Under the pieces are notes generated by a model. That model made no database searches, was not told the origin of the DNA, and saw nothing but the letters and a program-made list of their open reading frames with translations. Position numbers and translations under genes: made by a program. A stretch of DNA of 64,000 nt, taken from the NCBI GenBank assembly GCA_048013815.1, contig CM106585.1:8122001-8186000 (forward strand), read 5' to 3'. Positions 2,942-53,136 of the stretch are shown one piece after another; within the stretch, counting starts at the first letter, position 1; each line of letters begins with the position of its first letter. Source of the stretch: Setoptus koraiensis (taxonomy: Eukaryota; Animalia; Arthropoda).

Positions 2942-4660
2942 CTATACAATCACAAACGGCTCGCATCGATAACGTCCTAATAGATTCAGGGAGAAACAAG
3001 TAATAGTCTAATATCAGCAATGGATTCTAGTAAAGAGTAGATGATGGGTCGATGAATTTCTGATATTTACTTATTTCATAGTAGCAATGCTCTTACCTGA
3101 TCTTATTTCGCGTTTCAATAGTGTCATTTTGTAGCCTGTGGAATCAACACTGAAGCCAACTTTTGAAAGAGTAGAATCTGCGACTAAAAATTTGACATCG
3201 ATAGGACTTGGATATGGCACTGAGTTCTTCGAGGAGATATTTTGACTTCCAAGGCACTTGTGAGAAAATTTGGCAAATAATGAACCAAAACCTTCTGTGT
3301 TCTGATAACATTCTAACGAGTCAAATTTCCAAGTCAGTTGATTAATACAATTATTCCAATGAGCCTGAGGTTTAGTTATAACATTTTCTCCTAACTTGAG
3401 GCTTATGACTGGACTCGGTCTCGCAAAGTTATGGCTAGATTGGTAGGCGGAGGAAAGAGTGCCATCTTTATCGGTAGAATTTCTTTCGTTCATATTCTTG
3501 GTATCATTGCTATTATTATTCTTGCATTTGAGCGGAGAGTTGTTATCACCATTTGAATGTCTAGTACTGGATAATAAATCATTTAAATTCACAGAGATCG
3601 CAATCTCTCTCAGTCGATCAAGAGGTATACCACTATCATCAGAGTGTTTGAGATCGATACGTAACTTAATTATCTCCGGTTCAAATTTCCAATAAGCACA
3701 CACTTGAATAGGGCAGCAACTCATCAAAGTGATCGGGGCGATTTTGTATCGTAGCACGTCCACATTATAATAACTTGAAGTGGGAGATTGTTCGCTCATT
3801 TTCCTCAAATGTGCCATGAGGAGATCCGTATCAATTTCGAAAACTCTAGAGGTTAGATTATTCTGATTGAATTTAGATTGAGTGCTCTCATTGTGTATCA
3901 ATCGACTTGCATAGTATTTTGTTATGTTCTCAGCTGAGTTTAAACGAAACCTCAGAGGTAGTGCTGGTCTGCCATAAGCCCCTTTAGCAAACGCATTGGG
4001 AAAGGCGAGTTTCAAGTTTCCCATAGATCTCTCAGTGAATTCCGGTACAAAATCCGGATCATACTCTTCTTGGTTTTCTGTGCCAAGATTGAGGCTTTGA
4101 GTATCAGTTGATGGAACACAGTAACTGTTCGATGTCGAAGTTATTGCCTTTGAGTCTCCTTGCGTTGATGATGTAGCATTTTGTAGCATCAGTGGGCACT
4201 CGTTGCTAATATTTTGGTCTCTACCTGTACTACTCCTTTTTTCGTGTCTTATTGTACCTTTTATTAGCAGCTCAATCGATTCTTGTATGGCTACGGCAAT
4301 CGGTATTGTATCACCATGATTGACAGCGGTTAGTGGAGATGATGTGCGTGAAGGTGATATGACATTGGAGAAAGCTGATCTGTTGTTAAATTCATTGACT
4401 AGACTTGAACAACTTGGACTTGAGTGTAGCCCATACATCGACGTAGATGATACAGAAGACAAAGAAGACTGTCTCCTCGATAATGACGGATGGGGTGTCG
4501 GACCCAACGGACGCCATGACTCTACAGACGCCTTGAGCTCTTGAATGGTAGCCGCAGCTGATCTAGAGTTATCTATACTAGATTTAGGTTTAATATTAAT
4601 CCTGATGCGACGGATAGGTTCATAGTCATCGGAGTCCGAATCTGAGCTTGAGCTGCTCAT
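2942..4660 (-). CDS. FCHO2: FCHo/SGIP1 (muniscin) family endocytic protein with an AP2-activator-like block and C-terminal mu-homology domain; no F-BAR seen
   Basis: ORF 3071..4717 contains SSSSSDSDSDD..IRINIKP and TIQELKASV (FCHo linker blocks), IPIAVAIQESI, GNLKLAFP, YYNVDVLRYKI, CCPIQVCAYWK, KPQAHWN, GSLFAKF and DSTLSKVGF (muHD). Predicted terminal intron 3096..2977 (TCAG|GTAAGA...CTATTAG|GA) yields the ending KREIRSGRYRCEPFVIV* (stop 2944..2942). First ATG is at 4660; the 5' end is uncertain. Confidence 0.85.
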
Positions 4661-4761
4661 TTTATTTTGAATGTCATTCCGGATTGAGATGATAATCAAT
4701 TTATTTCCTCGCGCCAATATATCGCCATCAGCTTATAATACAATAATGTTGATAGATAACC

Positions 4762-41094: not shown

Positions 41095-44000
41095 TCATTC
41101 GATCATCCAATTATTGGCCGACCACAAAATGGCTGCATCGCACCCTAATCCCGTCTTATTCGACACTTGTTGCTCAGTATCTAAACTTGTCAAATAACGA
41201 TTGATTACATTTCTGTATTGGCTACCTATGGTGACTATGTATTTAACTGCATTCGTTTGATTACTAATGCTATCTAATAATGTCACGCTACCGCTAATGT
41301 TTCCATCGCGCGACTCTATTCCTGAATCGGCATTACTCAAACTGTCCATCCAGTTATTGTATCTGATTGTGGGCACCAATATGGTAACATCGGCTTCGTA
41401 TGGTCTGAATACAGTGATCGGTTTTAGTGTGTCTGCTTCCACTAGCATGATACATCCGTGACTCGTTCCAACATACAATTGATTGTTTAACTTGGCTATG
41501 CTTGACACTCGACTATGACGCGCCTCATCGTGATGATTCTCTATGCTAATTGAATCTAAACTCTCTGAACATGGCACCAGTTTCCAACAATCCAACTTTC
41601 TCGCAACGCATCTGTCTGAGCGACTCCACAAGTGCACCGTACAACCGGCCGCTGTCCAAAGGTTGTTGCCTGAACCGGCCAATATAAATCTTATGTCTGT
41701 CGGTTGGCTTGGTTCCACTATCCTTTCGCCACTCAAATCAACATTGGGCACATTTCCCGCCAATGGCAAGATGCTCTGACGAGCTATCTCATTATCGACA
41801 ATCTCTAAGCAACTGATGGCATTGTTGTGACCACACCAAATATTGAATGATGAACCTGTTGGTTGCTGTTGGTGTTGTTGATTGCGACTAATTCTAGTTG
41901 CATCACTATTGTTAAGCTCACAACTTGTATTAGTTGTGCCCAGCGATGATTGTTCTTGAATTGTTACGCATAGATAAGTCACGGAGCCATCGTCCAGTCG
42001 GCGCGTATTCATCGTGCTCACATGACATATCCACAATTGGCCATAATTGGTCAACATTATAACACTATTGGCTTGTTTGACGTAATGCATCAATTGAACA
42101 TTAGACATCATTATGTCAGATTTTATCATGTCCAACGAGAAACTGTCAATCAAATTTAAGCTTGGCTTATTGCTGTTGTTTTTCATCGATGACCTGCTAG
42201 TGTCGCTGCTGTTAAAATTGACGATGCCCATACCTAATTCAATATCGGCGGAACTATTCAATTGGATGGAGCTTGTTAAGTGTGTTGAATGAGCTGGCTG
42301 ATGAAATTGATTTAAGTCTATTATGTGTACAGTCATACGAGCATCGCATAACCACAATTGATCTTCAACAACACAGGTGCAAGTAACTAGAGATTGATTT
42401 GATGATGATTTCGTCTTGATTGTACTAAATGATTTATTCAATTGCAATTGTTTGTAATTAAACCATTGCGATTGATTGGCTCTCAGTATGTCGATCTTGT
42501 TTAATTGACGTGTTAGCCACAGCTCCAATTTCATGTCATCGTTCTCCATTATTTGCATGGCCACACCATGCAATATCGATTGACTTTTGCCCTCCAAAGC
42601 TACAACATCTTGCATTTGTACAAACTCTGGACAACTGGCTATCGAGACAATCTGACTAGCTGTAGGCCTGTTAGATGGTTCCTGAGACCAGCAAACGGTC
42701 ATTAGATCTATCAGGTAACTGGGATAAATTAAATCACGAGGAGACAACGATGGCCGTCCGCCATCTATGACGTGTCCTTTGATACTATCTAAATGATGTT
42801 CAAATGGTGGATGCAAAGTGATCAGTTCATAGATGAACATTCCGAATGAGAAACAATCAACTTTTTCTGTATATTCCTCGTCGCCGTTGTGACGTAATAT
42901 TTCCGGTGCTAAAAATCCAATTGTGCCGCCAAAACCCTTGATGCCAGTGGGTAGTGCTAATCGGGATATACCGTAATCGGCCAGTTTGACATTGACATTG
43001 CTTGATGTTGATCTAGTTGCGAATGGTGATGGAAAATCCCATACAAGCACATTTTCGGATTTTAAATCACGATAGATGACACGTTGTTGATGAAGATATT
43101 CCAAAGCTCTGGCCACTTGTAAAATGATCTTTTGCATACAGAAAGCGTTTATTCGCATACCAGCGCGCCTATAACCTTTAAATATATCCTCTAATGAACC
43201 AAATGGGGCCAATTCAAGTATAACAGCTAGTGGCCTAATAGACAATCCGACGAATGGTACAATATGCGGATGATGTAATGTCAATAATATATTTAACTCT
43301 TGTCTAGCTGTACAATAGGCCTTGCAGGCACATTGAAGAGGTTCACGTTGCCAATTGGTCTTTGATGATTTGTAGGCCAGCATGTCAGCTTGATCGGCAT
43401 CTGGTCCAGGGTCAATAGGCTGAAGCATCTTCATTGCTATTTCCGGTGACGATCTCATATGCACTGATGATTCCTCTTGTTTATCGCCACTCATGAGTGT
43501 TGTGAGATTGTTGTTGTGCAAAGTGCCACGAAATACTAGACCATAAGCACCGCGGCCAATTAGTTTGTAACGATGAACGCTTTCGCCATCGATTAGATAC
43601 TGACTACCAACATCACAGAAAACAATATCAGGCGCAATTCTAGTGAGTTGTAGCTCGCCATGATTTGGACATTTCAAACAATGTCTAAAGGACGCCTTCT
43701 TACTACTGCCGATCATTGCTGATTGCCTGATTGTTGCTTGTGATTGAATCGTTTCCATATTGTAGGCACACAAGATGCATTGCTCCACATAAAAACAGTG
43801 TATCATTCTGACAGACGTCAGTCCTGGTACCTCACTGGGATTATCTTTCATCGCAGCAATGCCGGCATCATCGCGACCGCTATTCATGGAGGTAATGTTG
43901 AACTTGATCTGCTGTGTTTGTTTCGATGATGCAGCTATTTTCTGGGGTTGCTGCTGATGTTGTTCATGATTTCTAAATTCATATTCACACTGAGGGCATG

Positions 44001-47000
44001 GCACAATACGAGTAACGAGATACTTGCCCTCAGATGTGTGCACAAACCTTGTGCCCAAGCTTGGATACCAATCTTCTAGAAGATTGTCAATATGATCTAC
44101 AATGGTGGACATTAGTTTTGCTATGCATTGAGAATTCAATTCAATGTAATCGACTGTTGCCGAATCGCCGCCATCTTGTCGGTTTATAGCCAATCGCCAA
44201 CCGGGTAAATGAACCTCTACTATGCTTGTGAACTGTCTAGGATCATACTCACACCAATCTGTTGCGTCTTTAGTGGTGGCTGGCTGGACATGATTTGAGT
44301 AGATCATGTAGCGCGCTCGATTTCCAGAGCCCCAAATGCTTGTGTCACTATTGACACCGTTGTTATAAAAACTAGACTCTCTTATTCGCAAAACAAAATT
44401 ACTAGAATTATTTTGCAAATAAGCTACTTTACCAGTCGAAGATAAAGATTGACAATCTAAATGTAAACATAATCCCGACTGCCAACATGTCCAACTGGAG
44501 CCACTGCTGGTTATACTCGATATGACATGATCCTTGGCCATCTCTTCGGGTATGTCCATGAATAATGAACTCACAATGTCATTGATACCCATGTCGCTTA
44601 GTATACAAGATTGTAAGCGGGAAAAGAAGCCTGCTGGCAAATATCTCAACATGATAAGTCTGTACAAAGATCTATCTGGTTGTTGTTCAACATTGACAAT
44701 AGTTTTGGATAATTGTTGATTCAATTGGTGGTATTTACTGCTATCTATACTAGCGGAACGGTTTTTCTGAGATGGGTGCCAACGACGAATCGCGCTACGT
44801 CCGCGCACTCGACTAGATAATTTAATTTCGCATGGCGAAACTCCATTTTGTAGATCAGTCTCCGTGGGCAACAATGACGGCAACAGAAGATAACGTGAAT
44901 TCCATGTTAGCGCAACCTCGAATTTGTTCAATAAATTAACAATGTAGGATTGGATACCTCCGCTTAAATTAACGTCCACTGATTTAAACAAATAATTTAA
45001 ATCATCTATTTTCATCAATCCATTTTTGGCATAAGGATTTATCTCACGAATGGTCACCACATGGCTTAAAATATCACACAACCATTGTGGATCGAGGAAG
45101 TATAAATCTCTAAGATTAGCATCCTCATAATGCAACAGTATACCATTCTCATGTAGGAATCTTGTTGCTTGTTGTAGTTCACTATTGTAATTTATTTCCC
45201 TAGAGCTGAGCGGCTCTAAATCTCTGAATGATTTTTGGTATTTGTTTCTCATTAGACCAACAACAGTTGTCTTGTATTCGTCATAAAACATGACAGGATC
45301 CTTACGCGACTTGCGACGCTCATTGGCTAACCAAACAACTATTTCTTCTAAATAAAGATAAGTGGCGGGTATTTTCTGTTCTAATAAACGCTCCATACTT
45401 CCGGGGCAGCGTAGCGAAAATACTGTATCATAGATTTTGTTACACAAGTTTCTTATGTTCAATCTGGTCTTGGTGGAAACAACTATACTGTCAACAATCT
45501 TGGGAAAACCACACTTGTCCTGGTCCACTATATTGATAAATCTTTGTTTAATTTGAGACTGTAACTCAGCAACTCTGTCACCTTGCTCACCTCCTATAAT
45601 TAAATCTTCATGTGTGCCGACAATAATAACAGGGGAACCTGGCGCTCTCGATTGAATGTTAACTAGCCATTGTTGAATTCCATCTACGCCACTTTCTCCG
45701 TCTGTAAGTCTCCAAACTACAAGATACATGGATCGCTTACTTAAAAAGTATCTATGAGTAGCATAAAACTCTTGTTGGCCACCAAAGTCCCAGGTAGAGA
45801 ATGTGACAGGGCCGAACGTTGTCTGACCTCTTGCAACTTTCTTGCAGAAAACCCAGTCGTGTATATCAACACCTACCGTGGAAAGTGTTACACCTTTTGG
45901 TGTTTTCATGTTACCTATAGAGCCGTGACCCATTCTTTTCGTCCAATGCTCGGGTGGTGACCTCTTTTTATTTGATATTGTACCTTCATATCGTATCTGT
46001 TCTAACAGAGAGGTCTTACCAATACCTTGTATACCCACTAACATAAGCTTCATTCGCGCATAGGATTTTGCTTCTTCCAATATAGACCTGAGGTAACCCA
46101 CAATATCCATAGTTTTGTAACTCTTTGAATCAATCATTGACTTAAGTGGATGACCGAGATTGCAACCGTGCAAACCTAAATTCCACAATTTGCTTAACAA
46201 ACCCATTTCCGGTGGCAATGTACACACAGATGGATTACCGCTGAGATTTAGTACGGACAAATCTGCCAATTCTGAGATATTACTAGTTATCTTGACTAAA
46301 GAATTGAAGCTCATGTCTAATATTGTGAGATGAGGAAATAGAAGATTATGTTTGGATTCTTTTAGCTGCTGAGACTTAGTAGACTGTTCACTATTCGAAT
46401 GAACGAGATCTGAGCTCGATATGGCAATCACTTTTAAACGATTATGGCTGAGATTTAAAGACTTCAAATTCTCTAAACGTTCGTGGAACTTGTGAATACA
46501 ATATCCTTTGAGATAACTAGACTGATTCAAAACGGAAAATTGAGTTTTGCCAATAGGTGAACTTGATGAATTGAAATCTAGGTAAGCTTCGTTGTTGTAG
46601 CAGTTTGTTTCAAAACTGTTGTCGACAGTGTCCGCAGGAATTGCGAACCATGATGAAATTTGATTGCTGCTGAGATCGAGATTCTTCAAACTAGATGGGT
46701 AATCATGTATATTACCTAATGACTCCATTCTATTATGACTCAGATTCAATCTTACCAGTTCGAAAGCGACGCAGGCTAACACTGGTGGTATGGAAGTAAA
46801 TGAGTTGAAAGATAAATTGATATGATTGAGCTTGCATTCATGCCTATAGGTACTCTTGCTGATATCATTATCTGTGCTATTATGATTTGTTGGACTACCG
46901 ATCGGAATAATAGAACTTACTACGTCGACTTTAGTTGACCAATGATTAAGATGGTTGATATGTACGTCTGATGTAACCAACTTGGATTCCTCACTATTTA

Positions 47001-49548
47001 TTATGGAAAATGCACTCTCACTTTTGATGATACGACTTGTATCTGGATCATAAAATCTGGATATTGAATCATCTCTCGATAGTCTTTTAGTATTATCGAT
47101 AATTGTTCTTGAAAGTCTTGACTGTTGGTAGTCAGTCGGATTCTGTCTTGGAGTGTAACGCTGCGGTAGATCGTGCAAAAGATTTCCTGACGCGTTGAAT
47201 TCCCTCAATAGAGGAGCTGTCCACAAGGTCCATGGTAGTTGCCGAATCTGGTTCGAAGATACATCCAAATCGGAGAGTTTTGGTAACTGAAACAAACACA
47301 ATGGTAGTGATGTTAGTCTATTGTCGTGTAGATCCAATAATTCTAAACATGGCAAATCCCAGGTGTAGGTGCTAGTAGAGGGAAGCGAATTGGCACTTAA
47401 AGTTGATGTCAAGCTTTTAGAACGTTTCATTGCTAAAGATTTAGCGTTATCATTTTGATTTTCATCAGCTTCTTCATTGATATTTAATAGATTAAATTCA
47501 ACTGGTAGAATTTCCAATTTGTTTTGTGATAGGTTAAGTTCTCTGAGAGATGGCAGTTGAAATATCAAAGGATTTATAGATTTTAAATTATTTCCAGATA
47601 GGTCCAACCTTGTTATGGCAGCAATGGAAACATTCTGGTGATTCAAGCTCAATTTCTTGTTATGTGACAAAGCCGCGTCAATCAACCATTGCGAGTCAAT
47701 ATGTCTTAAAAATTTCAGACCATGCCAATCGATCATCACCGGACTAGTCGGAAACATTGAGCTGAAAGTGGTGACAGTGCTGGAGGGTTTACCTGAATGT
47801 GTCGTCTTGTGAAACTCAATGTTACTCCTTCTATTTATCTTATATTCAGGATCCACATAGGCCCCTAATGCAAGCAGCTTAGATAATAACAGTGTGTCAT
47901 CATCTGATGCTGCTGTTTGTAAGGCTAGATTGTCGTCGTCACGAGCACCATACTTGATAAGTAGCTCAACCATTTTCACATCATGGCGACGGCAAGCCTC
48001 CCTCAGACAAGTCGATTTTGCAGACTTAAACCAATTGAGACCGACATCCGATTTTTTTGAACGATTTGGAGGCGCAGATTCATTCAGATTTGGCCCATCA
48101 CCTTTGATATTCTCTTTTGACAAAATAGGTAGATTTGGATTCGCACCGTTCACAAGTAATGTGGAAGCTATAGAGTAGTATTGTTTGCAAACAGCAACAT
48201 GGAGGGCAGATTCGGAATTGTAATTGCAATAAGTGTCGATTTCAAATGGGCATATAAGACAAGTACTCCTGTTAGTATCCTTGCTATTTGTATTTGATTT
48301 CTCATTATCATCAAGTTTGTGCAGACGCCTAATAATTTTGTCCAGTTGCTTGTTGGGCACGAACTGGTTTCTATCATCATTGGCAACTCCATTATTTTGA
48401 ACAATTCTAACATGTCGTAATTTGTTTTGAGAACTAAACTCTTTCACATGATCTTTGGATGTATTATGACTAGTGATCTTTGAATTAGATTGATTTTGCA
48501 ATCTTAATTTAGCTGGTAGACGAAATTGCAGTAGAGTATCTAACATCTTTTGGTTGTTCTTTAAAGCTGCCAAATATATCACAGTTTGTCCCGCCTCATC
48601 TTGCGCGTTTAAGTCAAATGCAAATCTGTATTCGTAGAGGCTAGACCTACTGACAAAGATATTCTTTAGTTTCTCAGGGTATGTATAGTTTAGCAGGAGT
48701 TTAATAGCCTCACAATGGTTTTTGATGCAAGCTATATGAATTGGCATCCATTTTTCAATCGTTGTCTGTTGCACATGAGTAGGAAAATTGTCTATCAATA
48801 ATTGCATTGTTTCAGTAAATCCACCAAAGGTTGCAACATACAAGGGTGAGTAGTTGGTTGTTGGTATGCATTTGGCTGTTGCACCCAATTCTATTAATAG
48901 TTTACATAGTTGCGTATGGCCTAGAGAGGCAGCTTTAAATAATAGAGTTACAGTGTTATTGGGTGCCCAGTTGATTAGATCCTTGATACATGCATCAGCA
49001 ATTATCGGCGCCTCCGATGATTTCGGTTCTTTCTCTAAGAAACTTTTTTTATGATCATCTAAAATTTTCTTGAACTTTGTAAGTTCATTTTTGCTACAAG
49101 CCTCGTCAAGTAGTGAGTACAAGTTTCTTCTACAATCGTAAATTTCCTTTTGTTTCGCTCTTATTAATGTTAAGATTGTCTGGTTATCACAAAATTGAGC
49201 TATTTCCTCTGGCGAAAGATTTCTATCATCACGTATGTTGAGATTGACCTGTGACTGCTCTAAAATCATCTTGACTAGGTCGTAATTGCCCAATTCGGTG
49301 GCCAAATGCATGGGAGTTCTGGCTTTCATTGTATCAAATATATTTGGATTAGCGCCATGCTTAAGTAATATTCCAACACACATGAGATCATTTCTTGCAA
49401 CTGCCAGATGGAGTAGTGTATTTCCATCCCCATCGAATGAATCAATCAACTGTTTGCCATCTCCGCAAAGAAGATCGTCCAAGAGGGATTCATTTTGATG
49501 TTGCACCGCACTGAATAATAAGCTGCCTATCTCTGATTCATCCATCAT
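41095..49548 (-). CDS. Lrrk: Leucine-rich repeat kinase (ROCO family, invertebrate Lrrk/LRK-1 type): ANK-LRR-ROC-COR-kinase-WD40, single exon
   Basis: 2817-aa ORF with ankyrin repeats (GNTLLHLAV, RTPMHLA, SALHVAV), LRRs (LDLSGNNL, LNLSQNKL, LDLHDNRL), ROC (LVGIQGIGKT, STVGVDI, WDFGGQ, IVGTH), COR (FLHENGILLHY, DPQWLCD) and kinase (GRGAYG, IYRDLKSENVL, KLADYGIS, GFLAPE), followed by a beta-rich C-terminus. Confidence 0.97.
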   Translation of the reverse strand: MMDESEIGSLLFSAVQHQNESLLDDLLCGDGKQLIDSFDGDGNTLLHLAVARNDLMCVGILLKHGANPNIFDTMKARTPMHLATELGNYDLVKMILEQSQVNLNIRDDRNLSPEEIAQFCDNQTILTLIRAKQKEIYDCRRNLYSLLDEACSKNELTKFKKILDDHKKSFLEKEPKSSEAPIIADACIKDLINWAPNNTVTLLFKAASLGHTQLCKLLIELGATAKCIPTTNYSPLYVATFGGFTETMQLLIDNFPTHVQQTTIEKWMPIHIACIKNHCEAIKLLLNYTYPEKLKNIFVSRSSLYEYRFAFDLNAQDEAGQTVIYLAALKNNQKMLDTLLQFRLPAKLRLQNQSNSKITSHNTSKDHVKEFSSQNKLRHVRIVQNNGVANDDRNQFVPNKQLDKIIRRLHKLDDNEKSNTNSKDTNRSTCLICPFEIDTYCNYNSESALHVAVCKQYYSIASTLLVNGANPNLPILSKENIKGDGPNLNESAPPNRSKKSDVGLNWFKSAKSTCLREACRRHDVKMVELLIKYGARDDDNLALQTAASDDDTLLLSKLLALGAYVDPEYKINRRSNIEFHKTTHSGKPSSTVTTFSSMFPTSPVMIDWHGLKFLRHIDSQWLIDAALSHNKKLSLNHQNVSIAAITRLDLSGNNLKSINPLIFQLPSLRELNLSQNKLEILPVEFNLLNINEEADENQNDNAKSLAMKRSKSLTSTLSANSLPSTSTYTWDLPCLELLDLHDNRLTSLPLCLFQLPKLSDLDVSSNQIRQLPWTLWTAPLLREFNASGNLLHDLPQRYTPRQNPTDYQQSRLSRTIIDNTKRLSRDDSISRFYDPDTSRIIKSESAFSIINSEESKLVTSDVHINHLNHWSTKVDVVSSIIPIGSPTNHNSTDNDISKSTYRHECKLNHINLSFNSFTSIPPVLACVAFELVRLNLSHNRMESLGNIHDYPSSLKNLDLSSNQISSWFAIPADTVDNSFETNCYNNEAYLDFNSSSSPIGKTQFSVLNQSSYLKGYCIHKFHERLENLKSLNLSHNRLKVIAISSSDLVHSNSEQSTKSQQLKESKHNLLFPHLTILDMSFNSLVKITSNISELADLSVLNLSGNPSVCTLPPEMGLLSKLWNLGLHGCNLGHPLKSMIDSKSYKTMDIVGYLRSILEEAKSYARMKLMLVGIQGIGKTSLLEQIRYEGTISNKKRSPPEHWTKRMGHGSIGNMKTPKGVTLSTVGVDIHDWVFCKKVARGQTTFGPVTFSTWDFGGQQEFYATHRYFLSKRSMYLVVWRLTDGESGVDGIQQWLVNIQSRAPGSPVIIVGTHEDLIIGGEQGDRVAELQSQIKQRFINIVDQDKCGFPKIVDSIVVSTKTRLNIRNLCNKIYDTVFSLRCPGSMERLLEQKIPATYLYLEEIVVWLANERRKSRKDPVMFYDEYKTTVVGLMRNKYQKSFRDLEPLSSREINYNSELQQATRFLHENGILLHYEDANLRDLYFLDPQWLCDILSHVVTIREINPYAKNGLMKIDDLNYLFKSVDVNLSGGIQSYIVNLLNKFEVALTWNSRYLLLPSLLPTETDLQNGVSPCEIKLSSRVRGRSAIRRWHPSQKNRSASIDSSKYHQLNQQLSKTIVNVEQQPDRSLYRLIMLRYLPAGFFSRLQSCILSDMGINDIVSSLFMDIPEEMAKDHVISSITSSGSSWTCWQSGLCLHLDCQSLSSTGKVAYLQNNSSNFVLRIRESSFYNNGVNSDTSIWGSGNRARYMIYSNHVQPATTKDATDWCEYDPRQFTSIVEVHLPGWRLAINRQDGGDSATVDYIELNSQCIAKLMSTIVDHIDNLLEDWYPSLGTRFVHTSEGKYLVTRIVPCPQCEYEFRNHEQHQQQPQKIAASSKQTQQIKFNITSMNSGRDDAGIAAMKDNPSEVPGLTSVRMIHCFYVEQCILCAYNMETIQSQATIRQSAMIGSSKKASFRHCLKCPNHGELQLTRIAPDIVFCDVGSQYLIDGESVHRYKLIGRGAYGLVFRGTLHNNNLTTLMSGDKQEESSVHMRSSPEIAMKMLQPIDPGPDADQADMLAYKSSKTNWQREPLQCACKAYCTARQELNILLTLHHPHIVPFVGLSIRPLAVILELAPFGSLEDIFKGYRRAGMRINAFCMQKIILQVARALEYLHQQRVIYRDLKSENVLVWDFPSPFATRSTSSNVNVKLADYGISRLALPTGIKGFGGTIGFLAPEILRHNGDEEYTEKVDCFSFGMFIYELITLHPPFEHHLDSIKGHVIDGGRPSLSPRDLIYPSYLIDLMTVCWSQEPSNRPTASQIVSIASCPEFVQMQDVVALEGKSQSILHGVAMQIMENDDMKLELWLTRQLNKIDILRANQSQWFNYKQLQLNKSFSTIKTKSSSNQSLVTCTCVVEDQLWLCDARMTVHIIDLNQFHQPAHSTHLTSSIQLNSSADIELGMGIVNFNSSDTSRSSMKNNSNKPSLNLIDSFSLDMIKSDIMMSNVQLMHYVKQANSVIMLTNYGQLWICHVSTMNTRRLDDGSVTYLCVTIQEQSSLGTTNTSCELNNSDATRISRNQQHQQQPTGSSFNIWCGHNNAISCLEIVDNEIARQSILPLAGNVPNVDLSGERIVEPSQPTDIRFILAGSGNNLWTAAGCTVHLWSRSDRCVARKLDCWKLVPCSESLDSISIENHHDEARHSRVSSIAKLNNQLYVGTSHGCIMLVEADTLKPITVFRPYEADVTILVPTIRYNNWMDSLSNADSGIESRDGNISGSVTLLDSISNQTNAVKYIVTIGSQYRNVINRYLTSLDTEQQVSNKTGLGCDAAILWSANNWMIE

Positions 49549-50218: not shown

Positions 50219-51004
50219 TCAATTACGCGTCCTAGCACGTACTATAGTTTTTAGTACTTCGGATGGATCGACTCTCTGTTCAGACGGTAAACACTGTCGG
50301 ATCCGTGACCAATAGGATGGGTGCACTTTCTCGGAGCACTCTTCCCGACTAAGCCATTCATAGTCATGCTGTCCCACAATTTTATCTTGATTTGTGAATG
50401 CTTTCAAGAAAAATACCTTGGCCCCTTTGGCATTTATATCCGACGCAATCTTTTTAGGGTAGTTGAAAACGTAGACGCTAGCAGGAACTGTTCCAAGAAA
50501 GCGACACTGTAACATTGCATCCAAACCTATCGACTCTGTGAGTGCTCGCCTGGCTGTATCTATGAGTAGTTCACCATCTTTAATTTGGGCTTGCGGTAAG
50601 AGCCATTGGTTTTTTGTATCAGATCCAAATTTTTGATTGAGAACGAGAATGAGGTCCTTATCTAAACATCTGTTAAAAGATTTCTTATTGTTTTCGTCTT
50701 TAGTCTTATATGGTCCGAATTTGAACAGTGATCTCTCCGCCTTAGACGCGTCCTCAAAGTCTTGGGCTGTTTGTTTGGCTGAAGCCTCGATATCTTCATT
50801 TGAAGGATTCTCTTCCGATGCCATCCGTTGAGCTAGTTCCCTGTCTCTTTGGTGTCTGATCTCATGTTCCGATAAACAGCTATGTGCGTTCTCATAATTT
50901 TCAAACAAGGATTGCACTCTCTTCTCGATTATGTCAATCTCAGGTAGAACAATTGCGGTGCGCCTCAATATGACAGCACTATAGATATGCCAAATGGCAC
51001 TCAT
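50219..51004 (-). CDS. MRPL46: Mitochondrial ribosomal protein mL46, single exon
   Basis: From ATG 51004: WHIYSAVILRR..LSEHEI..SFNRCLDKDLILV..WLLPQ..DTARRAL..KGAKVFFLKA..DYEWL, the mL46 pattern with a degenerate NUDIX-like region. The upstream TTG start in the track is not needed. Confidence 0.88.
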   Translation of the reverse strand: MSAIWHIYSAVILRRTAIVLPEIDIIEKRVQSLFENYENAHSCLSEHEIRHQRDRELAQRMASEENPSNEDIEASAKQTAQDFEDASKAERSLFKFGPYKTKDENNKKSFNRCLDKDLILVLNQKFGSDTKNQWLLPQAQIKDGELLIDTARRALTESIGLDAMLQCRFLGTVPASVYVFNYPKKIASDINAKGAKVFFLKAFTNQDKIVGQHDYEWLSREECSEKVHPSYWSRIRQCLPSEQRVDPSEVLKTIVRARTRN

Positions 51005-51331
51005 TCTAAAGAATCGTCTATTGACTTGAATCACTAATAACAGGCACAAATGATGACAAGATACAATTCACAAATGAGGTATTGATATTGGCTTCAAATC
51101 AAAGCTGAAGACCGAAAATCATTTCCATCTGTAGTGCATCTGAAAGCATGGTTGATAGTGTAATTTTACTATAATAGAAATTGAATTGCGCGCCTCAATT
51201 CATGTTTACAACAATGTGACCGAGAGATATAGTACGTACATAGAGGCCCAAACTTCATAATTCACTGGCAACGTGTAACCGGCCTCATTTTATCACTTTT
51301 ATTTCAATCTTTTATTACTGAAACCCTCATC
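51005..51331. promoter_or_regulatory. Compact bidirectional promoter region between MRPL46 and RFC1
   Basis: Head-to-head ATGs are 327 nt apart. It contains GAATTGCGCGCCTCAATTC (about 51182-51200), a GCGCGC core between inverted GAATTG/CAATTC arms, loosely E2F-like. Confidence 0.55.
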
Positions 51332-53071
51332 ATGTCTACTTGGGTAGATAAATACCGACCAAAACAATCATTCCAGATTGTTGGTCAGGCCAACAATGTT
51401 AAACATCTGAAAGATTGGCTGATCAACTATGATTCGCCCCGAAATAAATTCAAGGCGGTTTTGATGTCCGGACCTCCAGGCATTGGCAAAACAACAACCG
51501 CACAATTGGTATGCAAGGAGGCTGGTTATGATTACATCGAAATGAATGCCTCGGACCAACGTAACAAGAAAGCTATTGAAGAGCAACTATCTTCCATGGT
51601 GAAAAATTCCCGTTTGAATTTTTTCGGAAAAGCATCCGCCTCGAAGAATGCTCTGATCATGGATGAGGTTGACGGTATGGCGGGTAATGAAGATCGTGGA
51701 GGAGTAGCTCAATTGATACAGATAATCAAACAAACAAAACTACCTATTATATGTATTTGTAATGATGCTTCACACCCAAAAGTGAGATCTCTTTCCAACT
51801 ACTGTGACACTATAACCTTCTACAAGCCCAAGAAGGAGCAAGTTCGTGCCGTCGTTATGTCTATTGCCTGCAAGGAGAATATCAAGATCGACCAAGAGAC
51901 TATATATAGCCTTATCGAATCGGCTAATTTTGATATACGACAAGTGGTCAATTATTTATCGTTGTTCAAGCAATCGCAAACATCCAACAGCAACGATATC
52001 AAAACAGTTCGTTTGAGTACTTTCGATGCGACGAAAAAAGGATTTACTCATGGGGAATGTCATAATATCAACGATAGATTTGAAGTGTTCTTTGCGGATT
52101 ACAACATAATGGCTCTTTTTATGTATGAAAATTATGTGCATGTTAAGCCCCAAAAAGCAAGGAGCGAATTGGATTCCTTGAAAGCAGTTAGCAAATCTAT
52201 AGACAGCATGTGTATCGGAGATCTCGTTGACAGAGAGATCAGATCAAATCAATCATGGTCCATGTTACCAACTCAAGCCTTACTATCAACTGTGATACCT
52301 ACTTTTACCATGTCCGGCAAGATTATGTCACGTTTGAACTTCCCTGCCTTCTTAGGAAAATTGTCTAATGCTAACAAACGATTAAGACTTATGCAAGATC
52401 TGAAATCTCATCTAAGTTTAACTATAAGTGGAGGTCGCCATGCGCTCAATCTAGACTATCTTGAAACTCTACGCGAAAGACTCAGTAAACCTTTGGTTGA
52501 TAAGGGTGCACAAGGAGTGGATGATGTTATCGAATTCATGAGGCAGTATTCTCTCAGGAAAGAAGATATGGACAGCATTTTGGAGTTGTCACTTTGGTCT
52601 AATCAGAGAGACACAATGAATTCTGTTGACTCCAAAACAAAAGCAGCGTTAACGCGTACTTATAACAAAGCTGGCATTGTTTTGCCTTATTCCACCGAAG
52701 AGAAAGGAGCCAAGAAGCGTAAATTCGTATCGCTGGATGTTGAGGAAGATGAAGGCGATGAGGAAGACGAGGAGGAAGACAATAACATAATTAAACCTAA
52801 AAAAATTGTCAAAAAGGCCGCCACAAGCACCAAGGCAAAAGCCGAACCCAAGGAATCGAAGGCAAAAGCTGAGCCCAAAGAATCAAAGGCGAAGGCCGAG
52901 CCCAAAGAACCAAAGGCGAAGGCCGAACCCAAGGCAAAAGCGGAACCCAAAGAACCTAAAGCGAAGGCTGAGCCCAAAACAAAGCCAGAAACGAAAGCAA
53001 AGCCAGAAGCGAAAGCAAATGGTCAACAGGGTACTATACTAGGATTTTTCAAGAAACAAAGAATCGAATGA
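51332..53071 (+). CDS. RFC1: Replication factor C large subunit, lacking the N-terminal BRCT region, single exon
   Basis: MSTWVDKYRP (RFC box II), GPPGIGKTT (Walker A), IEMNASDQR, LIMDEVDGMAGNEDRGG (Walker B), PIICICND, and the RFC1 C-terminal domain FPAFLGKLS..KRLR..LDYL..TKAALTRTYNK. Confidence 0.95.
   Translation: MSTWVDKYRPKQSFQIVGQANNVKHLKDWLINYDSPRNKFKAVLMSGPPGIGKTTTAQLVCKEAGYDYIEMNASDQRNKKAIEEQLSSMVKNSRLNFFGKASASKNALIMDEVDGMAGNEDRGGVAQLIQIIKQTKLPIICICNDASHPKVRSLSNYCDTITFYKPKKEQVRAVVMSIACKENIKIDQETIYSLIESANFDIRQVVNYLSLFKQSQTSNSNDIKTVRLSTFDATKKGFTHGECHNINDRFEVFFADYNIMALFMYENYVHVKPQKARSELDSLKAVSKSIDSMCIGDLVDREIRSNQSWSMLPTQALLSTVIPTFTMSGKIMSRLNFPAFLGKLSNANKRLRLMQDLKSHLSLTISGGRHALNLDYLETLRERLSKPLVDKGAQGVDDVIEFMRQYSLRKEDMDSILELSLWSNQRDTMNSVDSKTKAALTRTYNKAGIVLPYSTEEKGAKKRKFVSLDVEEDEGDEEDEEEDNNIIKPKKIVKKAATSTKAKAEPKESKAKAEPKESKAKAEPKEPKAKAEPKAKAEPKEPKAKAEPKTKPETKAKPEAKANGQQGTILGFFKKQRIE
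52832..52978 (+). repeat. Coding repeat: six AKAEPK(ES/EP) units in the RFC1 tail
   Basis: KAKAEPKES KAKAEPKES KAKAEPKEP KAKAEPK AKAEPKEP KAKAEPK, with synonymous codon differences between copies. Confidence 0.9.
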
Positions 53072-53130: not shown

Positions 53131-53136
53131 AATAAA
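53131..53136 (+). terminator. Probable polyadenylation signal of RFC1
   Basis: AATAAA about 60 nt after the RFC1 stop codon. Confidence 0.55.

Follow-up and report, generated by a model that had tools for sequence, protein, structure and literature searches.

RFC1, the large subunit of the eukaryotic clamp loader, has a long N-terminal arm (PCNA-interacting protein (PIP) box, BRCT domain and 5'-DNA site) whose role is still being worked out. The PIP box of the archaeal large subunit, RFC-L, sits at the C-terminal end, and canonical C-terminal PIP boxes are carried by yeast Pol32 (QGTLESFF) and human POLD3/p66 (QVSITGFF). In human RFC140 a PIP box lies at the extreme N-terminus and is conserved across nine eukaryotes; an N-terminal fragment of the protein that carries F6A/F7A loses its PCNA-dependent accumulation at damage sites (PMC1888830). 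The replication-factory targeting sequence of RFC1 consists of the PIP motif and a stretch of positive residues (bioRxiv 10.1101/2020.05.26.118224). Positive flanks raise the affinity of PIP boxes as much as four orders of magnitude; binding is disfavoured by acidic flanks (PMC6881253). Yeast Rfc1 274-861, which is arm-less, responds normally to ultraviolet light and hydroxyurea and shows only sensitivity to methyl methanesulfonate, so the core suffices for loading and the arm matters for some repair. The PCNA of Pyrococcus furiosus is bound by an RFC-L PIP-box peptide (Matsumiya et al. 2002, as cited in PMC3504372). Here we describe the RFC1 gene of the eriophyoid mite Setoptus koraiensis, found in a stretch of 64,000 nucleotides (assembly GCA_048013815.1, contig CM106585.1, positions 8,122,001 to 8,186,000 of the forward strand) that we call the window.

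The predicted protein has the AAA+ module at its start and a PIP-type box at its end. We consider it probable that in eriophyoid RFC1 this C-terminal box compensates for the lost N-terminal one by PCNA docking or targeting. Our literature search found no paper on a C-terminal PIP box in eukaryotic RFC1 or on eriophyoid RFC. The features of the gene are, in window coordinates:

51332..53071, + strand: RFC1 gene, a single exon of 579 amino acids plus stop; the protein opens MSTWVDKYRP at the clamp-loader AAA+ module
51470..51493, + strand: Walker A P-loop GPPGIGKT (residues 47-54), in columns that are invariant in the RFC1 alignment
51608..51625, + strand: internal AAA+ loop SRLNFF (residues 93-98), aligned by HMMER to human TSIKGFY (6vvo_A) and yeast VVGYF (8dqz_A)
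52682..53068, + strand: C-terminal tail (residues 451-579, 129 amino acids), predicted disordered by AlphaFold2
52712..52723, + strand: KKRK basic cluster (residues 461-464), candidate nuclear localisation signal, the role being inferred
52736..52780, + strand: acidic patch DVEEDEGDEEDEEED (residues 469-483), usual in animal RFC1 tails according to the tail comparison
52787..53026, + strand: tether (residues 486-565, 80 amino acids), IIKPKKIVKK followed by KAKAEPKE-type K/A/E/P repeats, net charge +14
53027..53050, + strand: PIP box QGTILGFF (residues 566-573), matching Q-x-x-[ILM]-x-x-[FY]-[FY]
53051..53071, + strand: basic flank KKQR (53051-53062), then IE and the stop, a TGA with a second TGA next to it
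53131..53136, + strand: AATAAA polyadenylation-signal candidate, 60 nucleotides past the stop; the closest relative (contig L001) has one at the equal relative position

To compare the position of the motif across animals, 199 RFC1s from outside the acariform mites were taken, all starting with methionine and at least 800 residues long. The core motif (MDIRxFF type) was found within the first 20 residues of 154 of these full-length proteins and within the last 25 residues of none; the rest of the 199, without the N-terminal motif, look like incomplete or alternative N-terminal models. The sampled tick, scorpion, spiders, myriapod, insects, crustaceans, molluscs, echinoderm and vertebrates likewise have the N-terminal motif and no C-terminal box, and the trombidiform mites Leptotrombidium and Halotydeus, which open MDIRNYF and MMDIRSYF, have no C-terminal box either. 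Neither an N-terminal PIP box nor the replication-factory targeting sequence is present in the window RFC1 or in the 37 other members of its clade, described below. On this distribution the N-terminal and C-terminal states of the motif are mutually exclusive in every sequence examined, and the counts outside the acariforms suggest that the PCNA/replication-factory motif has been replaced at the opposite terminus.

The RFC1 gene (51332-53071, +) is one unbroken frame of 579 codons closed by a TGATGA double stop. Contigs from what is probably the source sequencing run are collinear with this DNA, and small fragments matched elsewhere. In Pfam, the window protein matched the RFC1 collar/A' domain PF08519 at 2.2e-54, with profile positions 1-158 of 158 covered, as well as AAA PF00004 (1.2e-15) and the RFC1-type lid PF25361 (5.5e-16). 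Its best match among solved structures was the human RFC1 chain 6vvo_A (2e-126, HMMER); the matches to the paralogues CTF18 (1.8e-19) and ATAD5 (1.5e-6) were far weaker. Residues 3-508 align to residues 297-850 of yeast Rfc1 (8dqz_A). Judged by these Pfam and PDB sequence matches and by its nesting in the acariform RFC1 tree, the window protein is an RFC1 orthologue and not Ctf18, Elg1/ATAD5 or Rad17.

The protein begins only 46 residues ahead of Walker A. Upstream of the ATG there are in-frame stops in the approximately 282-283 nucleotides up to the mRpL46-like neighbour, which ends at 51049. Because of this start and these stops, we conclude that the window RFC1 has no BRCT or other N-terminal arm. 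AlphaFold2, run with a 36-sequence alignment, predicted residues 1-450 as folded. The predicted local distance difference test score (pLDDT) was below 50 across nearly all of residues 451-579, without secondary structure, so the tail is predicted to be disordered; it was also low at residues 92-103, around the SRLNFF loop. The counterpart of SRLNFF is a PCNA-contacting element of RFC1 (PMC3201878, together with established knowledge of RFC:PCNA structures), and since this internal loop is kept, clamp opening is expected to be conventional. From the sequence comparisons, eriophyoid RFC1 is reduced to the clamp-loader core (AAA+ module, lid, collar and A' domain; residues 1-450), with the N-terminal arm gone. 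Engineered RFC1 truncations (yeast Rfc1 274-861 and 295-785; human RFC1 minus its first 555 residues, 6VVO) start within a few residues of the window protein. Such core-only proteins do load clamps and, unlike the mite proteins, have no PIP box added. As they still work, the BRCT arm is an accessory feature of the family; the N-terminal PIP box is another.

Within the window protein, only QGTILGFF matched the strict PIP pattern, and nothing else fitted the minimal core [ILMV]xx[FYW][FYW] either. A strict box appeared anywhere in the tail in 1.5e-4 of tail shuffles and within the last 20 residues in 1e-4 of whole-protein shuffles, but the conservation of the motif in relatives is a stronger argument against chance than these figures. 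The box combines the canonical pattern with a predicted disordered setting and with positive flanks, KKQR on one side and the net-positive tether on the other. The KKRK cluster has a conserved counterpart in other RFC1s, KK[RK][KR] after LPY, and IIKPKKIVKK at the start of the tether is the counterpart of the conserved DAMIKxKK motif. The repeats are built on 27-, 18- and 45-nucleotide tandem DNA repeats at 52832-53019. An initial annotation of this DNA had read the gene as RFC1 ending in a canonical PIP box, and both the identity (by Pfam and PDB matches) and the box, at exactly 53027-53050, are borne out. KKRK, the acidic patch and the basic residues after the box lie where it had placed them. 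The K/A/E/P repeats it had described are also present, although they span 80 residues and not about 70. The long charged tether that it had stressed is predicted to be disordered; by comparison with other tails, it is mostly an ordinary animal RFC1 tail (acidic patch, DAMIKxKK-type motif and K-rich end) lengthened by repeats.

The clade to which the window RFC1 belongs comprises 38 short RFC1s: the window protein, its closest relative P0001, which comes from a public run, those of Fragariocoptes setiger and Aceria tosichella, and 34 proteins from public runs. In a maximum-likelihood tree of the conserved core, the 38 formed one clade with 100% support in the Shimodaira-Hasegawa-like approximate likelihood-ratio test (SH-aLRT), on a stem of 0.73 changes per site. 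This eriophyoid clade sits within a well-supported clade of acariform-mite RFC1s, and the window's species branches outside the large subclade that contains Aceria. All 38 proteins start at the same point, at the AAA+ module, which indicates that the short architecture is a trait of the superfamily Eriophyoidea.

P0001 is 88% identical to the window protein, and its contig, L001, is syntenic with the window (order LRRK, mRpL46, RFC1). It retains QGTILGFFKKQR exactly, and its reading frame is kept despite repeat indels relative to the window. All eight codons of the PIP box (8/8) are identical between the window and L001, and flanking codons have non-synonymous changes. In a MAFFT alignment, the window box and the terminal motifs of 28 further acariform RFC1s fell into the same columns, and the tether was unalignable. 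The last approximately 16 residues can be aligned throughout the clade, in which divergence of the conserved core exceeds 1 change per site. Among the 38 members, 23 have [ILM]xx plus two aromatics, seven have one aromatic, one is degenerate and seven have nothing in the available sequence; at least 30 of the 38 end in [ILM]xx plus aromatic, then basic residues. The commonest ending, up to the stop, is KRPPxNGIARFFxAKKQKSS. The Fragariocoptes RFC1 ends LSDIRRFFVK, that of Aceria ends SNDISRYFGAAKK, and one eriophyoid subgroup ends TLDSLWKTK or QPKLSQFWK. Position 4 of the box is isoleucine in 22 of the 30 clear cases and I, L or M in all 30. Within the six positions after the box, basic residues average 2.2 and acidic ones 0.1, and the aromatic pair is retained within otherwise aromatic-free K/E/P/A sequence.

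Eleven gene calls of the clade apparently lacked the motif. Several of them end KKVR[TI]S before the stop, which is the translation of a splice donor, AAG/GTAAGA or AAG/GTGAGA. Five cases could be checked for a missed intron. Four of the five (L002, L004, L005 and L007) regain the motif in an in-phase second exon, which is K-rich, ends GGI[AL]RFF..KKQ[KR]SS at the stop and has KRP ahead of this ending; in the fifth (P0027/L006), the second exon gives only a degenerate NGSIKMLL. For P0025, contig L009 stops 30 nucleotides past the RFC1 stop and is too short to show a second exon. Eriophyid RFC1 genes have a phase-0 intron right after IKPK(R/K)V(I/V)K..KK (L002 about 4465-4700; also L004, L005, L006 and L007). 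Automatic gene calls read through this intron and miss the exon that bears the PIP box; neither the window gene nor that of its close relative has an intron there. The intron just after the IKPKK motif in relatives could be taken to mean that the window tail is an annotation artefact, the mRNA ending or being spliced upstream so that the PIP box is never made. This is very unlikely, given that the window frame is unbroken from the core to the double stop, that the AATAAA 60 nucleotides past it is conserved, that the 88%-identical relative keeps frame and box despite repeat indels, and that the intron-bearing relatives splice into an exon ending in the same motif.

Several observations weigh against the idea that the C-terminal box stands in for the N-terminal one as a PCNA-docking element. 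The pair formed by the window and its only close relative has identical PIP codons and gives no synonymous-versus-non-synonymous signal. Very few independent evolutionary events underlie the N-to-C correlation, which is therefore beyond statistical testing; outside the eriophyoids, the sampling of C-terminal boxes amounts to one oribatid sequence and one doubtful tetranychid model. Some eriophyoid versions of the box are weak (LW, FM, LL), and P0029 (L008 272-1726, sister to Aceria) is apparently tailless, ending right after the IKPKK motif, with no second box-bearing exon within 1.5 kb. This suggests that the terminal motif may be dispensable. In P0029 a convergent COA8 gene begins 10 nucleotides past the stop, and the entire tail, motif included, seems to have been lost secondarily. 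Glutamine is found at position 1 in only six of the 30 clear cases, and FF-type motifs are not specific for PCNA, the ISKFF and ISRYF versions also resembling Mlh1- or Rev1-binding boxes. By the sequences available, the glutamine that makes the box canonical occurs only in the window protein, the relative 88% identical to it and a small number of others.

The tailless P0029 and the LL version of P0027, together with a tether that evolves fast through repeat indels, would fit a motif that is an evolutionary leftover of little function, on a tail that is a drifting, repeat-expanded low-complexity extension with perhaps a nuclear localisation signal. We regard this as unlikely, as the last approximately 16 residues stay alignable across a deeply diverged clade where the adjacent tether does not, the aromatic pair is kept inside aromatic-free sequence and the motif survives on a separate exon. 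The missing glutamine bears on another possibility. PIP boxes overlap with the Rev1-interacting region (RIR) and the Mlh1-interacting peptide (MIP) box, and the terminal motif might be a promiscuous FF-type element whose main partner is the C-terminal domain of Rev1 (RIR-type) or Mlh1 (MIP box S-[KR]-[FY]-F), recruiting translesion or mismatch-repair factors. Most clade members have no PIP glutamine, and the endings of P0015 (ISKFF) and Aceria (ISRYF) both fit the MIP core. Nevertheless, the constant I, L or M at position 4 is a requirement of PIP boxes and not of RIR or MIP motifs, full canonical PIP boxes are present in the window, its close relative and the oribatid Oppiella, the partner of RFC1 is PCNA, and the motif apparently replaced is a proven PCNA binder. 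We therefore give a Rev1 or Mlh1 partner a low probability, slightly below that of the leftover.

The basic flank raises a further alternative. A PIP degron has Thr-Asp at box positions 5-6 and a basic residue at +4, and a terminal box of this kind would expose RFC1 on chromatin-bound PCNA to CRL4-Cdt2, limiting clamp-loader levels in S phase. The window follows half of the rule, with R at +4 (KKQR) and L-G at positions 5-6. A basic residue at +4 is also found in the common GIARFFxAKK form, but Thr-Asp is absent, most members having A-R, and RFC1 is not a known CRL4-Cdt2 substrate, which leaves this role very unlikely.

Compensation for the lost N-terminal box is thus the explanation that we favour. 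The make-up of the tail module equals that of the lost N-terminal sequence (a PIP-type box plus basic residues, terminal and disordered), and we read it as a functional replacement. The PIP-type box and its basic residues hang at the extreme C-terminus on a lengthened, net-positive tail that is predicted to be disordered. With a flexible tether of approximately 115 residues, the terminal box could extend to a PCNA protomer left free by the AAA+ domains and enter its hydrophobic pocket, or enter that of a PCNA ring already on DNA. Judging by length and not from a computed structure, we take such a tether to span the distance to every pocket of a PCNA ring that the loader holds or has nearby. 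The tethered box would concentrate RFC at PCNA-rich replication or repair sites and aid clamp capture, leaving clamp opening and loading to the conserved AAA+ contacts.

The mite box lies in the same protein family as the N-terminal PIP box of RFC1 (human RFC140 MDIRKFF, F6/F7). In both, basic residues come after [ILM]xx plus two aromatics, and the element lies at the very end of the protein on a disordered segment. The C-terminal SDIRRFF of Fragariocoptes is a string nearly identical to the N-terminal RFC1 consensus. The mite box differs in being at the opposite end, without the BRCT region or remaining arm, and the window box begins with the canonical glutamine, a residue that is impossible in an N-terminal box whose first residue is the methionine. 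Pol32, POLD3/p66 and Cdt2 also have, like the window protein, a canonical box at the extreme C-terminus of a long disordered tail, followed by basic residues, and in those proteins it is a flexible PCNA tether. They are however unrelated proteins with other jobs, polymerase processivity and ligase recruitment. The mite RFC1 tail is an evolutionary variant of known parts and not a new mechanism.

As in archaeal RFC-L, the large subunit of the mites is short, starts from the AAA+ module and has a C-terminal PCNA-binding box, predicted in the mite case, so that the layout noticed in the initial annotation is indeed mirrored. Unlike RFC-L, the mite protein has the eukaryotic PF08519 and nests in animal RFC1, and its tether is the eukaryotic acidic/K-rich tail. 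Based on the tree nesting and PF08519, the likeness to archaeal RFC-L is convergence, not descent. The same annotation had named no known PIP box at the C-terminus of animal RFC1, which agrees with the 0 of 199 above, and had placed an independent origin of the box in this one lineage. The latter does not hold, since a homologous terminal motif occurs across the whole eriophyoid clade and the oribatid Oppiella has one too. Its suggestion that the tail replaces a lost N-terminal extension keeps its support in the loss of the arm and in the complementary distribution of the motifs, but the part replaced is narrowed here to the published N-terminal PIP box, which it had left unmentioned.

The RFC1 of Oppiella nova ends GKQLTISSFFTKK (QLTISSFFTKK) after a 240-residue tail of like layout. 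At the other end, Oppiella opens MNSSDIQRKRK and Dermatophagoides MSSIKKRK, with the isoleucine and the basic run present and the aromatic pair absent; these N-termini look like decayed N-terminal boxes. This appearance of the sarcoptiform N-termini favours decay of the N-terminal box plus a C-terminal gain over a move of exon 1 to the 3' end. A Pfam scan (E up to 1) found no BRCT domain in the N-terminal portions of RFC1 from Dermatophagoides, Oppiella, Leptotrombidium and Halotydeus (P0122, P0028, P0030 and P0045) or in that of P0121, in contrast to a spider RFC1 N-terminal region with a BRCT match of 4.9e-16. The domain was perhaps lost or heavily diverged across Acariformes before the eriophyoid truncation.

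Two other sets of mite endings were set aside. Panonychus citri P0073 starts at the AAA+ module and ends LNQLIVYF, but it is a single gene model of uncertain quality and was not counted as a second swap in spider mites; no other tetranychid was found in the P0073-seeded search. The dust mites have short tails that end, after an acidic run, in GIMDFY and EVMDFY (two species of Dermatophagoides; P0122 and P0125) or QEEMLNFY (P0121). Because of the acidic flanks, which disfavour PCNA binding (PMC6881253), and the location at the conserved DAMIKxKK position, this terminal FY element is probably different from the eriophyoid box, though PIP-like in pattern.

A different C-terminal motif, which is unexplained, was seen in the non-mite RFC1s P0044, P0052, P0083, P0106 and P0079, where an acidic run precedes a final LLPEF, ILLDF, LIPEF, LLLDF or LPFFD; P0083 also retains an N-terminal DIRGFF box. 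In the window, an mRpL46-like open reading frame (Nudix-fold mitochondrial ribosomal protein; 50219-51049, -) is divergent from RFC1 across a short shared intergenic region. A neighbouring LRRK-type gene (41095-49548, -) encodes 2817 amino acids in a single exon, with ankyrin, LRR, Roc, COR, kinase and beta-propeller regions. The RFC1-LRRK neighbourhood persists across eriophyoid contigs in varying arrangements: in the window and L001, RFC1 and LRRK are divergent with mRpL46 between them, and in L002 and L004-L006 they are convergent, with LRRK directly downstream of RFC1.

The loss of the N-terminal PIP box and the gain of a C-terminal one were possibly, though we doubt it, a single ancient swap common to the eriophyoids and at least the oribatid Sarcoptiformes. 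If true, such a swap would be a rare genomic change bearing on the placement of eriophyoids in the mite tree, and a natural experiment showing that the PCNA tether of RFC1 is needed but independent of position; the later deletion of the whole arm in eriophyoids would then have brought a eukaryotic clamp loader back to the layout of archaeal RFC-L. Whether the motif is N- or C-terminal may also be a usable discrete character for placing the group, whose position is disputed. A whole animal superfamily is without the arm and yet has a putative PCNA-docking box at the opposite end, which argues that docking is the function of the arm that selection has insisted on keeping, and that either terminus can provide it.

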